Assembly: GCA_002269645.1 (NCBI GenBank)
Contig: NIVC01004163.1
Location: forward strand, 1-57,319
Origin: Macrostomum lignano
Taxonomy: Eukaryota
DNA: 57,319 nucleotides
Direction: 5' to 3'
Under the pieces are notes generated by a model that was not told where the DNA came from, searched no databases, and saw nothing but the letters and a program-made list of their open reading frames with translations. Shown here piece by piece: positions 7,413 to 13,400 of this stretch (positions are counted from its first letter, which is position 1; every line of letters begins with the position of its first letter). The translations under genes were made by a program, and so were the position numbers.

Positions 7413-10400
7413 CTTTCTCAAACGCCTGGCTTGGAACCTCGCAGTTTTTGGCGGCCTCTTTCAGCAGCTCCAGCATTTCGTCCTCAGTGATGAGCGGCAC
7501 GTATCTGGTGGGAGAAAAGCCAGGTAGGGATAAATCGATTTTCAAGGGCATGACAAAAGCAGCAAGAGACTTTCAGACTCCAACAAGTCTCAGTTCCGGC
7601 TCTAGAGCAGGTTGCTCGTAGGCATGATGATCTCCTCCCCCTCTAGATCAGGCAGACACCCAACTGGAAGTCCCCATCAGGCAGACACCCCACTGGAAGT
7701 CTCCATCAGGCAGACACCCCACCAGAAGTCCCATCATGCAGACACCCCACCAGAAGTCCCCATCAGGCAGACACCCCACCAGAAGTCCCCATCAGGCAGA
7801 CACTCAACCGGAAGTCCCCATCAGGCAGACACCCCACCGGAAGTCCCCATCAGGCAGACACCCCACCGGAAGTCCCCATCAGGCAGACACCCCACCGGAA
7901 GTCCCCATCAGGCAGACACCCACCAGAAGTCTCCATCAGGCAGACACCCCACCAGAAGTCTCCATCATGCAGACACCCCACCAGAAGTCTCCATCAGGCA
8001 GACACCCCACCAGAAGTCCCCATCAGGCAGACACCCCACCGGAAGTCCCCATCATGCAGACACCCAACCGGAAGTCCCCATCAGGCAGACACCCCACCGG
8101 AAGTCCCCATCAGGCAGACACCCCACCAGAAGTCCCCATCATGCAGACACCCCACCGGAAGTCCCCATCATGCAGACACCCCACCGGAAGTCCCCATCAG
8201 GCAGACACTCCACCAGAAGTCCCCATCATGCAGACACCCCACCGGAAGTCTCCATTTCCGGTGCCAGGCCCCCCCGTCACCTCTGGGCGCTGTGGCAGCC
8301 CTGGATGGCCTCGAAGCGCTGCACCACGAGCTCCATGGCGTTGGTGAAGAACATCGGCAGCTGACGGCCGATCACGCGGCCTCGCTTGACATCGTCCGGG
8401 CAGGGCAGCTCCAGCGACCACTTCAGCACCGTCCAGCGCAGCCTGGCGATCGCCTGGTCGTCCGGCTTCTCGGCCAGGGTGAGGAACTCCACAACGGTGG
8501 GGTAGCCGGGCGTCCGGTCCAGCTCGGACCGCCACTTGGACACGAGCTCGTCCACCGAGAACTCCTCGCCGGGCGGCAGGTTCTGCCCGATGGCGATCAC
8601 GATGCTCTTAGGCGCGCGGGCCTGGAGTAAGCGGATTGCCGGTGCGCCTGTCACTCGCCTGGCACTCCGATCCCAAGACGTGTCACTCTATGCAAATCCG
8701 TTACTCTGCAAATCTGTCACTCTGCAAATCTGTCACTCTATACAAATCTGTCACTCTGCAAATCTGTCACTCTATACAAATCTGTCACTCTATGCAAATC
8801 TGTCACTTTGCAAATCTGTCACTATGCAAGTCTGTCACTATGCAAATCTGTCACTCTATGCAAATCTGTCACTATGCAAGTCTGTCACTATGCAAATCTG
8901 TCACTATGCAAATCTGTCACTCTGCAAATCTGTCACTCTATGCAAATTTGTCAATCTATGCAAATCTGTCAATCTATGCAAATCTGTCACTCTGCAATCT
9001 GTCACTCTATGCAAATCTGTCACTCTGCAAATCTGTCAATCTATGCAAATCTGTCACTCTGCAAATCTGTCAATCTATGCAAATCTGTCACTCTGCAAAT
9101 CTGTTAATCTATGCAAATCTGTCACTCTGCAAATCTGTCAATCTATGCAAATCTGTCAATCTGCAAATCTGTCACTCTATGCAAATCTGTCGCTCTGCAA
9201 ATCTATCACTCTATGCAAATCTGTCACTCTATGCAAATTTGTCACTCTGCAAATCTGTCACTCTATGCAAATCTGTCACTCTGCAAATCTGTCACTTTGC
9301 AAATCTGTCACTCTGCAAATCTGTCACTTTGCAAATCTGTCACTCTATGCAAATCTGTCACTCTATGCAAATCTGTCACTATGCAAGTCTGTCACTCTGC
9401 AAATCTGTCAATCTATGCAAATCTGTCAATCTGCAAATCTGTCACTCTATGCAAATCTGTCAATCTGCAAATCTGTCACTCTAATGCAAATCTGTCGCTC
9501 TGCAAATCTGTCACTCTATGCAAATCTGTCACTCTATGCAAATTTGTCACTCTGCAAATCTGTCACTCTATGCAAATCTGTCACTCTGCAAATCTGTCAC
9601 TTTGCAAATCTGTCACTCTGCAAATCTGTCACTTTGCAAATCTGTCACTCTATGCAAATCTGTCACTCTATGCAAATCTGTCACTATGCAAGTCTGTCAC
9701 TCTGCAAATCTGTCAATCTATGCAAATCTGTCAATCTGCAAATCTGTCACTCTATGCAAATCTGTCGCTCTGCAAATCTGTCACTCTATGCAAATCTGTC
9801 ACTCTATGCAAATTTGTCACTCTGCAAATCTGTCACTCTATGCAAATCTGTCACTCTGCAAATCTGTCAATCTATGCAAATCTGTCATTCTGCAAATCTG
9901 TCACTTTGCAAATCTGTCACTCTATGCAAATCTGTCACTCTGCAAATCTGTCAATCTATGCAAATCTGTCATTCTGCAAATCTGTCACTTTGCAAATCTG
10001 TCACTCTATGCAAATTTGTCACTCTGCAAATCTGTCACTCTATGCAAATCTGTCACTCTGCAAATCTGTCACTCTATGCAAATTTGTCACTCTGCAAATC
10101 TGTCACTCTATGCAAATCTGTCACTCTGCAAATCTGTCACTTTGCAAATATGTCACTCTATGCAAATCTGTCACTCTGCAAATCTGTCACTTTGCAAATC
10201 TGTCACTCTGCAAATCTGTCACTCTATGCAAATCTGTCAATCTATGCAAATCTGTCAATCTATGCAAATCTGTCACTCTGCAAATCTGTCACTCTATGCA
10301 AATCTGTCACTCTGCAAATCTGTCACTTTGCAAATCTGTCACTCTATATCCATGTCACTCTAAAATATTAGGCAATAATCACGTTAGCAAGCCAATTAAC

Positions 10401-13400
10401 TACAAACCTGAATAGTCAATAGGCTCTGCTTAATCTTTTCGAAGGCCCCTGGCCGTCAAGGCAGTCCCACAGCAGCAGGTACAGAGTCTGCTTGGTGAGC
10501 ACAATCTCGTGCGTGCTGTCTATGGCCGGACTCGCGCTGCTGCCCGAGTGCAGCACCCAGGCGTGCAGGTGCAAGCTCAGTGGGAAGTCCTCCTGTGCAG
10601 TGGGTGAGTGCGGTTTTGGCTGTGAGCTCACACAGCAGTGACATGGACTTCTGGATTAACTAACTGGAGTGAAGACTGGCTGTGAGCACACACAGCACTG
10701 GATTAGCTAACAGGTAGTTTACCCCGGGAATTCCCCGCCACTCACCGGCGCCAGCTTGGCGGCGCGCAGATCCCGGGAGCCACGCCGAGGTGCCACCCGC
10801 CGGTGGGCGTCCACCAGATCGCGACGCGTCATCTGCAGGTGAAAAATCCGGGCCGGCGGCTGCAGCAGCGTGTCGCGGAGGTTTCGCCGGAGCGGCGCCT
10901 CCGCATTCCGGATGTAGTTCTGCTGCACCACCCGGTCCAGGGACCAGTGGCTGCGCTCGCCCCCGCCTGCCGAGTCCCCGGCCGCTGAATCGGCCAGGTA
11001 GAGGGAGCGAGCCGAGTCCGCGCAGCTGTGGCTGAAGCCGAGCCGGGCCATCAGCCACTCTCGGTCCTTGGGCTGCGGGCATCGGCAGGTGTTGAAGCAA
11101 TTAATCTATTTATCTCAATATATCCCACCTACTAAAATCCCATCTTCCAAAAATCCCATCCTCTAAAAATCCCATCCTCTAAAAATCCCATCTTCTAAAA
11201 ATCCCAACCTCTAAAAACCCAATCCTCTAAAAATCCCATCCTCTAGAAAAACCATCCTCCAAAAATCCCAACCGAAAATTCCATCCTCTAAAAATCCCAT
11301 CTTCTAAAAAACCCATTCTCCAAAAATCCCATCTTCTAAAAATCCCATCCTCTAAAAATCCCATCTAAAAAACCCATCCTCCAAAAATCCCATCCGAAAA
11401 TCCCATCCTCTAAAAATCCCATCGTCCAAAAATCTCATCCAAAAATCCCATCCTCTAAAAATCCCATCTTCTAAAAATCCAATCCTTTAAAAATCCAATC
11501 CTCTAAAAACCCCTCCTCCAAAAATTCCATCCTAGAAAGATCTCTAAGAACTTTCAAATAACATAACGCATATTAAAGATTTTGCACACAAGGCATCTCT
11601 TGCTTACTCCGTTGCCGGCCACAACCAGCTTCAGGTGATAATAGGGGCTGGTTCTGTACAGCTGCAGGCGAAGATGGTTCAGCAGTGGGATGGTGCTGAC
11701 GAAGCCTGCAGAGAGTGGACAGTCAGAAGCTCAAAGAGTTGCACTTTTGTTATGGATAGACATACAGACAGATAGACAGATATACAGAGAGACAGACAGG
11801 CAGACAGGCAGACAGGCAGACAGGCAGGCAGGCAGACAGGCAGACAGACAGACAGACAGACAGGCAGGCAGGCAGACAGACAGACAGACAGACAGGCAGG
11901 CAGACAGACAGACAGACAGACAGACAGACAGACGCGCAAACAGCCGCAGCCGCTCACTCTTCTGCACGAACTGGCGCAGCGGCTCCTGCAGCTGGCCGGG
12001 GTCGCAGACCAGCCGCATCAGCTGGCGGCACTGGGCCAGCTCCACCGGGATCTGCCGGATGCGGCTGTTGCTGCGGGGAGAGGGATGAGTGAGTAAGTGA
12101 ATGAGTGAGTAGGTGAGTGAGTCAGTGAGTGAGTGAGTGAGTGAGTGAGTGAGTGCATGAGTGAGTGAGTGACATTGGTGGGTGAGTGAATGAGTGAATG
12201 AGCGAGTGAGTCAGTGAGTGAGTGAGTGAGTAAGTGAGTGGTGATATTGGTGGGTGAGTGAATGAGTGAGTGGGTGAGTGAGTAAGTGAGTAAGTGAGTG
12301 AGTGAGTAAGTGAGTGAGTAAGTGAGTGAGTAGGTGAGTGAGTGAGTGAGTGAGTAAGTGAGTGAGTGAGTGAGTGAGTGAGTGAGTGAGTGAGTGAGTG
12401 AGTGAGTGAGTGAGTGAGTGAGTGAGTGAGTGAGTAAGTGAGTGAGTGAGTGAGTGAGTGAGTGAGTGAGTGAGTGAGTGAGTGAGTGAGTCAGAGTGAA
12501 CGCATACCCGGAGATGTCCAGAGTCTCCAGCATGGCCAGCTGACAGACGCTGGGGGGCACTCGGTGCAGCCGGTTGCCACCCAGGATGAGGCGGTGCAGG
12601 CCAGTCAGCTTCGGGATCTTCAGCTGCAGCGGCAGGGTGCAGTGCGAGTGAAAATATTCATTGAATTCATTGAAATTCATTGAAACGGGACACAAACTCC
12701 AGAAAATTAGGGAAGTCAAGCACCACTGCAGCCTACTAACAGTAGCTGGTCGCAGGCAGCAGTTCTACTGTCAAAGAGGTGGGTTCCAGCCCTATTGCAG
12801 CTACTACAGCCTACTAACAGTAGCTGATCGCACAGAGCAATCGCCCAGTCAGACCTCATAGTCGTAGACGAGGTTGCGCCGGAACAGCGGCAGCGGCAGA
12901 AAGCGGGATCCGTTAGCGTCATGAAATCGCTCCTCCAGCTGGTTGTTGGCGAGGTCCAGCTCAAAGAGCAGATCACAGCGCCACAGGTGCGTGGGCGGCA
13001 AGGTGGTCAGCTGATTGCGGGCCAGCGATAGGCGCGATAGAGTTTCTGAAATTCGGTAGTTTTTAGCATGCATTTATGGTTAGTAAAATATTTTGGAAAA
13101 CAGTAAAATATCGAAAAATTCTACTTGGCCTACTGAAAGTAAGCGCAAAGTACGAGCGCACATTATTTATTCAGAAGGAAAAAAATACGAAAAACCTACG
13201 CGACTACTTAAAGCAAACAGAAATCCGAGAAAATCGATTAGCACTCACTGACGGTGACCATCATCACCAGGGACTTCTCAGAGGCGAGGCAGTTGCCAGA
13301 GAGCCGGAGCTCCCGCAGGCTGTTCTGCCACAGGGTGGACAGGTGGCCCGGAACGTTCGAGATTTTATTGTCGGTGAGGTCGAGAAATTCCTGAAGAAAA

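Follow-up and report, generated by a model that had tools for sequence, protein, structure and literature searches.

Does the LRRK-family gene on contig NIVC01004163.1 of the flatworm Macrostomum lignano encode a working kinase whose Roc domain has ceased to be a GTPase, or does its unusual Roc sequence reflect something else, such as decay of the gene or a faulty assembly? The stretch of DNA analysed here, referred to as the window, comprises positions 1 to 57,319 of this contig (57,319 nucleotides, nt), and the gene lies on its minus strand. A first-pass annotation, made from the letters of the window, had placed a ROCO/LRRK protein at 8281-11705 and had taken its Roc domain for a pseudo-GTPase. 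Every computational test available spoke for a Roc that is degenerate yet retained, in a genuine ROCO/LRRK gene. The sequence evidence makes it probable, at roughly 0.6, that the gene encodes a functional LRRK-family kinase with a nucleotide-free Roc domain, i.e., a class i pseudoGTPase, the class defined by the lack of nucleotide binding (PMC12490416).

The nucleotide-binding motifs of Roc

The gene was followed in a second assembly, Mlig_3_7, at a polished locus of 44.6 kb (NIVC01000735.1:239180-283845, hereafter L001), and in the M. lignano gene models of UniProt, which are labelled here P0001, P0002, P0003, P0041, P0043, P0044, P0045, and P0047. The last of these is the NCBI protein BOX15_Mlig024703g2 of the Mlig_3_7 assembly; L001 lies in this gene, the annotation of which was derived from a transcriptome assembly and points to transcription. 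A phmmer search of 1.84 billion representative proteins returned three near-identical proteins, all of them M. lignano models, and later searches added P0043, P0044, P0045, and P0047. The exons were rebuilt by hand. Their splice sites, all of which are canonical, and their phases agreed from the ATG at 18049 to the exon end at 7413, with ~2.8 kb of coding sequence without an in-frame stop. The part of the gene that encodes Roc contains the following features, all on the minus strand:

11608..11705, minus: Roc exon 1, with the linker helix, beta1, and the first half of the former P-loop; 100% identical to L001 1315-1412
11073..11607, minus: intron between the P-loop exons, with a 16-nt tandem repeat (Tandem Repeats Finder array 11122-11533) and no coding exon
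10746..11072, minus: Roc exon 2, with PKDRE (11072-11058), alpha1 EWLMARL (11060-11040), the ~57-residue disordered insertion, and beta2 ARIFHLQM (10853-10830); 0 differences from L001 over 327 nt
10787-10770, minus: RRGS motif in the 3' part of Roc exon 2
10408..10592, minus: Roc exon 3, with beta3, degenerate G3 WVLHSG (10559-10542), the switch II helix, and beta4 LYLLLWD; broken by a 1-nt deletion
8681..10345, minus: intronic 16/34-nt tandem array of ~98 copies
8281..8621, minus: Roc exon 4, with beta5, degenerate G4 GQNLP (8588-8574), alpha4, beta6, alpha5, and the start of COR-A; phmmer match to LRRK2 Roc at E=2e-11, and 79 bits with the Roc model described below

The former P-loop is split between Roc exons 1 and 2. 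At this junction (11608|11072), the donor reads CTG GTT GTG GCC GGC AAC GGA|gtaagc and the acceptor cccgcag|CCC AAG GAC CGA GAG TGG, in phase 0 on both sides, and the junction is used by three UniProt models (P0001, P0041, and P0043). The P-loop position in the joined protein reads GNGPKDRE. This stretch fitted without gaps to the consensus ..kLmvvGlegrGKttllkaL of a hidden Markov model (HMM) that was built from 20 LRRK Roc homologues, and phmmer placed it in the same register against human LRRK2. The gapless HMM alignment means that G-K-T reads D-R-E, as the first-pass annotation had proposed. Helix alpha1 (EWLMARL) follows directly after the P-loop, as it does in the relatives.

The motifs covered were G1 to G4. 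The annotation's readings of G3 as WVLHSG and of G4 as GQNLP were recovered at 10559-10542 and 8588-8574, respectively, in positions that are canonical in all 20 homologues. Its inventory of lost motifs, correct for the P-loop, G3, and G4, had overlooked two further changes: G2 is absent, and ~57 extra residues, rich in Arg, Ala, and Ser and predicted to be disordered, stand after helix alpha1 and before beta2, in place of switch I. HMM positions 37-86, which run from switch I to G3, have no counterpart in the M. lignano Roc. In the MAFFT alignment, GxxxxGK[ST], TVG, WDxxGQ, and GTHxD were kept in 20/20 homologues, and the GxxxxGK[ST] P-loop was present in each of the 29 homologues with sufficient upstream sequence. 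The motif losses are substitutions, and they are the same in two assemblies and two gene variants.

An alternative exon supplying GxxxxGK[S/T], which the annotation had named, if shown by transcripts, as one of the observations that could overturn its reading, was sought in both assemblies. The tripeptide GK[ST] occurred in none of the three gene-strand frames of window 18100-7000 and of L001 1-10000; hence no hidden exon can supply the P-loop.

Two other readings of exon 11072-10746 were rejected. That part of it is an unrecognised intron disagrees with the identity of the whole 327 nt between the two copies, the flanking introns of which differ. The other frames used for this exon by models P0002, P0003, and P0045 were set aside because the chosen frame alone meets the AG in phase 0 and runs on to a recognisable alpha1.

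Fold, architecture, and relatives

Pfam Roc/COR models and a structure prediction had been suggested in the annotation as checks. The first came back empty, as Pfam reported no family at E<=1 for the 375-residue Roc-COR-A segment (the four Roc exons plus the 7504-7413 exon); nor did the Pfam Roc model match P0043 or P0044. The LRRK Roc HMM scored the Roc segment at 91 bits, and the second half of Roc aligned gaplessly to residues 1401-1524 of human LRRK2 Roc (phmmer, E=2e-11). The structure prediction agreed with the proposed domain. From an alignment of 16 LRRK homologues, AlphaFold modelled Roc-COR-A with a predicted template modelling score (pTM) of 0.70 and a mean predicted local distance difference test score (pLDDT) of 72.7. 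The predicted order beta1-alpha1-beta2-beta3-alpha2-beta4-alpha3-beta5-alpha4-beta6-alpha5 of a G domain is kept, and it is followed by the COR-A helices; pLDDT fell below 50 in the insertion (residues 50-106) and in switch II (160-168). The best Foldseek matches of the model were LRRK2 (8tzf, E=6e-13) and LRRK1 (8e04, E=4e-12), and then Rab, Rac, and Rho. The LRRK2 alignment, the HMM score, and these structural matches all bear out the ROCO/LRRK identity assigned to 8281-11705, and the predicted G fold with its motifs lost is in line with a pseudo-GTPase Roc, the nucleotide independence of which would follow from the sequence.

A Roc domain that still binds nucleotide in a non-canonical manner through the shifted Lys of GPK, or that binds another ligand, would make the protein an atypical or hydrolysis-dead GTPase. 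We consider this unlikely. Four motifs were lost together, the guanine-selecting Asp of G4 is replaced with Pro and the Asp of G3 with Val, the Mg2+-binding Ser/Thr is replaced with Glu or Asp, and switch I with its Thr has given way to a disordered loop; known domains with the same pattern are class i pseudoGTPases (PMC12490416). These replacements weigh against the Lys that persists one position upstream of the canonical site (GNGPKD), against the P-loop region being modelled at pLDDT ~84-89, and against the strong conservation of the Roc exons, which shows that the region matters.

The remaining exons of the gene that were found in the window, and the sequence beyond its last exon, are as follows:

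18031..18049, minus: exon 1, with the ATG (MTGRPI) and donor GTGAGC; exact mapping of P0001, P0041, and P0043, and sequence
17529..17802, minus: exon 2, N-terminal, encoding an ankyrin-like repeat (Pfam Ank_2 25.8 bits, below the 27.3 cut-off)
14726..15432, minus: exon 3, ankyrin-like region and first LRRs, with a 1-nt frame break at 15263-15260; gene models and sequence
14353..14635, minus: exon 4, LRRs; Pfam, gene models, and sequence
13249..13390, minus: exon 5, LRRs
12855..13045, minus: exon 6, LRRs
12508..12623, minus: exon 7, LRRs
11958..12070, minus: exon 8, last LRR and linker to Roc; identical in L001
7413..7504, minus: COR-A exon, after which no further exon of the gene was found in the window
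1..7263, no strand: no relation to the remainder of the gene; the exons for COR-B, the kinase, and the C-terminus are missing

The LRRs (leucine-rich repeats) N-terminal to Roc scored above the Pfam cut-offs (LRR_8 90 bits, LRR_4 91 bits). The ankyrin matches remained below them, Ank_2 as listed above and Ank with 20.1 bits (cut-off 21.1), as did COR-A, which scored 29.2 bits (cut-off 35.3) in the sibling locus and models. The evidence for COR-B and the kinase comes from the sibling locus L001 and from the sibling model P0044 only, as the window holds only the first COR-A exons, 8621-8281 and 7504-7413. In P0044, Pfam scored COR-B at 39.5 bits (cut-off 27) and Pkinase at 132 bits, and the kinase carries VAAK, the alphaC Glu, YRDLKSDN, DYG, and APE. 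The best solved relatives of the COR-kinase part were LRRK1 (228 bits, E=2.6e-66) and LRRK2 (190 bits, E=4e-55). As to a C-terminal WD40 domain, the last 414 residues of P0047 had no significant sequence match among solved structures. The resulting domain order is a short N-terminus, an ankyrin-like region, LRR, Roc, COR, kinase, and a C-terminal domain, with no armadillo region. This absence makes the architecture LRRK1-like, even though it is LRRK2 that gives the higher score for the Roc half-domain. LRRK2 is therefore no more than an alignment reference in the annotation, as LRRK1 is closer in architecture and kinase.

Human LRRK1 (ANK-LRR-Roc-COR-kinase-WD40) has what appears to be the same domain order, likewise no armadillo region, a COR that aligns, and the kinase motifs DLKSDNxLV, DYG, and GTPGYxAPE, and the predicted Roc-COR-A matches its structure 8e04. 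It differs in its canonical P-loop, whereas the M. lignano protein lacks G1-G4 and has an insertion of ~57 residues at switch I. The second half of Roc finds its best match in human LRRK2, which also heads the structural matches and has the YRD and DYG kinase motifs in common with the M. lignano protein. Unlike that protein, LRRK2 begins with a long armadillo region, and its Roc is active. In the phmmer search of the representative proteins, the closest relatives outside Macrostomum were weak LRRK homologues (E=1.7e-8 to 1e-3), from sources that include cnidarians, amphioxus, annelids, brachiopods, and echinoderms. The invertebrate LRRKs that were compared (Nematostella EDO31971, Branchiostoma LRRK2-like, and Owenia, and the LRRK1-like proteins of Lingula, Ptychodera, Patiria, and Tubulanus) share the Roc-COR core at 19-26% identity to the M. 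lignano Roc-COR, and all of them keep GxxxxGK[ST], TVG, WDxxGQ, and GTHxD. A canonical LRRK paralogue of M. lignano did not appear in word-indexed searches, an earlier run of which missed the gene's own model.

The known class i pseudoGTPases, such as the N-terminal domain of AAGAB and pG1/pG2 of p190RhoGAP, resemble the M. lignano Roc in that the G-domain fold is kept and the G motifs are lost, and in that the domain presumably serves as a protein-interaction module (PMC12490416, PMC5593906). None of them, however, is a Roc domain or forms part of a protein with a COR-kinase unit. In the literature searched, we found no paper linking a pseudoGTPase with ROCO or LRRK, and no relevant paper on LRRK in flatworms.

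Frame breaks, gene copies, and surroundings

Roc exon 3 lacks 1 nt in its GGGG run (10449-10446) and is out of frame in the window, where its own frame reaches a stop. It is the +1 frame that joins ARAPKS; with one extra G at 10449-10446 the exon is restored, and the LRRK2 alignment crosses the corrected reading without interruption. L001 has GGGGG at the equivalent site and an intact exon of 186 nt, and the corrected protein maps exactly onto L001. The break is therefore specific to the window assembly and is most likely an assembly error. The continuous reading 'IQARAPKS' of the first-pass annotation does not survive, as it needs a silent frame jump over this GGGG run. Its view of three motifs lost in intact exons needs a corresponding change: the losses are indeed substitutions, the same in two assemblies, but one of the exons, Roc exon 3, is broken in the window.

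A second 1-nt break lies in the CCCC run at 15263-15260 (minus strand), where each of the four UniProt models spanning this position requires five C to read AAP|PLS. L001 has a 1-nt break of its own in COR-B at 9845, where it reads gCCgac and the frame supported by LRRK1 calls for gCCCgac. As a consequence, the NCBI model BOX15_Mlig024703g2 starts at an internal MVKHDDG and omits ANK-LRR-Roc-COR. Single-base shifts between the UniProt models and the window also occur at 15162, 12880, 12027, ~10950, 10479, 8498, and 7460. The frame breaks differ by assembly, and each of them removes 1 nt from a run of C or G; such assembly-specific breaks, always in short G:C runs, fit consensus error and not decay. 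According to the genome paper, published PacBio data were used in both ML2 and Mlig_3_7, with 32% error-free bases in ML2 vs 64% in Mlig_3_7, and the mapped transcripts whose reading frames stay intact are fewer in ML2; Mlig_3_7 was Pilon-polished with Illumina and RNA-seq reads (PMC5730564). The breaks at 10449-10446 and 15263-15260 are best read as long-read consensus errors rather than gene decay.

Of the gene, the window carries the 5' two-thirds, and no COR-B or kinase exons were found in window 1-7400. The homology between the window and L001 ends at ~7263, within a tandem array of ~20-nt units (GGGATTTRRGAGTTAATCTY) that spans ~150 nt in the window (7263-7408) vs ~1.3 kb in L001 (6668-8000). 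Window 1-7263 matches nothing in the 44.6-kb L001 locus. The end of homology is either a mis-join or a rearrangement that truncated the window copy. A near-perfect palindrome occupies window 258-2828, with arms that are 99-100% complementary (e.g., 1231-1494 / 1585-1848) around a centre at ~1540; this suggests a long-read hairpin (missed-adapter) artefact and a contig end that is chimeric or artefactual.

The window and L001 represent two gene variants, with Leu352/Thr373 in the window and Val/Ile at these positions in L001 (codons of the 1273-nt stretch). In the shared coding sequence, 5 of 1273 sites differ (0.4%; 3 synonymous, 2 non-synonymous), with a ratio of non-synonymous to synonymous differences per site (pN/pS) of 0.22. 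The non-repetitive pieces of the introns differ at 16/650 to 27/790 sites (2.5-3.4%; Fisher p=8e-5 to 9e-8), so that exon divergence is ~six- to nine-fold below intron divergence. The P-loop exons are 100% identical, and Roc exons 1-3, including the degenerate P-loop and the insertion, do not differ at any of 611 sites, for which the probability at the intron rate is 3e-7. The exon-intron contrast in this one copy pair argues against neutral decay and for a Roc retained under selection. The degeneracy is identical in both variants and thus predates their split.

The possibility of a pseudogene, raised by the annotation itself, was examined on this basis. A decaying duplicate in a recently polyploid genome, already a pseudogene or about to become one, would account for the degenerate Roc, for the two frame breaks in the window, for the lack of exons after COR-A, for the break at L001 9845, and for the fact that none of the seven UniProt models extending to this part of the gene reads through 10449; large duplicated blocks are known in M. 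lignano (PMC5730564). We nevertheless regard it as improbable. The breaks are assembly-specific 1-nt deletions in C/G runs, and at 10449 the frame is intact in the polished assembly. The open coding sequence, the canonical splice sites, and the intact kinase motifs likewise speak against decay, as do the exons, which are far less diverged (0.4%) than the introns (2.5-3.4%), and the degenerate Roc shared by both variants, which predates the duplication. In addition, the 3' truncation coincides with the tandem-array break and the palindromic contig end.

An apparent motif loss that stems from faulty assembly or exon prediction, with the true P-loop supplied by an unassembled or mis-framed exon, is very improbable despite the error-prone assemblies, the disagreement of P0002, P0003, and P0045 on the frame near the run of five G at ~10960, and the collapsible tandem array between the P-loop exons, because the gapless alignment across the junction leaves no space for a missing exon, alpha1 follows directly (EWLMARL vs SLLARL), both exons are identical in two assemblies, GK[ST] is encoded in no gene-strand frame of the locus, and G3 and G4 were lost in separate exons by substitutions, which are rare among long-read consensus errors.

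Almost every intron of the LRRK gene consists mainly of a tandem array of its own, built from repeats of 4, 16, 21, or 34 nt that number as many as 175 copies (8681-10345, 11122-11533, 11758-11933, 12086-12491, 13649-14347, and 16281-17524). Copy numbers of the arrays differ between the assemblies; the intron between the P-loop exons measures 535 nt in the window vs 612 nt in L001. In a 14-kb intron of the LRRK gene in Mlig_3_7, a gene of 332 residues is called on the opposite strand (L001 23629-24718, minus), with no Pfam match.

Other genes of the window also lie on the minus strand. Directly upstream of the LRRK gene stand two short-chain dehydrogenase genes in tandem (19958-21217 and 21809-23056; adh_short 69 bits in the copy tested). 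They are followed by several tandem copies of a sodium/bile-acid symporter family (26677-29659, 31830-32330, and 35383-38729; SBF 74 bits in the copy tested), the encoded proteins of which are near-identical over long stretches. A (GAT)152 microsatellite with 98% matches occupies window 28121-28576, with a GTGAGT donor of the symporter gene on one side and a cag acceptor on the other. It is open in three frames (poly-His, poly-Ile, and poly-Ser), and a naive open reading frame call yields ~150 residues of poly-His. A filamin-like gene with many Filamin/ABP280 repeats extends over 43700-56157 (Pfam 259 and 250 bits in the two large exons tested).

A probably nucleotide-free Roc domain

In the preferred reading, that of a functional LRRK-family kinase with a nucleotide-free Roc, the domain preserves its G fold together with its second half (alpha3 to alpha5, packing on COR), and the residues that hold the phosphates, Mg2+, and guanine (G1, G2, G3, and G4) have all been replaced. 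Roc would then no longer cycle between GTP and GDP. It may serve as a fixed structural module that joins LRR to COR-kinase and supports COR-mediated assembly. Control of the kinase would have to come from elsewhere, e.g., from phosphorylation of the new loop at its RRGS site or from partners on the LRR/ankyrin parts.

Several points weigh against this reading. Splice signals, gene models, and homology are what supports the 11608|11072 junction and its reading frame. The polished locus also carries a frame break (L001 9845), the UniProt models that reach the 10449 site circumvent it in various ways, with 0/7 reading through, and the gene ends after COR-A in the window. The evidence for selection comes from one pair of very similar copies in one species with 5 exon differences, and the intron rates may be inflated by repeat-rich sequence. 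Moreover, the absence of synonymous changes from Roc exons 1-3 is below the expectation from the synonymous rate elsewhere (P=0.003), to which gene conversion or recent duplication could contribute. The word-indexed searches, a tool weak for negatives, returned M. lignano models only and no orthologue from another flatworm. Finally, in LRRK2 K1347A and T1348N and in LRRK1 K651A, GTP binding is lost and kinase activity is reduced (PMC5348726); by analogy with these P-loop mutants of the human LRRKs, an active kinase beside a dead Roc would need compensating changes.

A broader version of the same idea is tentative and, in our view, rather doubtful: an active LRRK kinase that is independent of guanine nucleotides, with a frozen Roc and, in place of switch I, a disordered, phosphorylatable Arg/Ser-rich loop as its regulator, may be conserved across Macrostomum or more widely in flatworms. 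If so, the scaffold role of Roc-COR would be separable from the GTPase cycle in a natural protein.

For M. lignano, a laboratory flatworm with a published transgenesis method (PMC5730564), the short G:C-run frame breaks in its assemblies mean that a second assembly should be checked before a gene is called a pseudogene. For the ROCO family, the finding would add it to the known sources of pseudoGTPase domains. For LRRK2 in Parkinson's disease, communication between GTPase and kinase is one of the main questions still to be answered. A natural LRRK with a motif-less Roc, a complete kinase, and signs of selection would offer a comparison for which Roc-COR-kinase contacts suffice without nucleotide and for which changes compensate, and with it a natural test of whether LRRK-family kinases need GTP.

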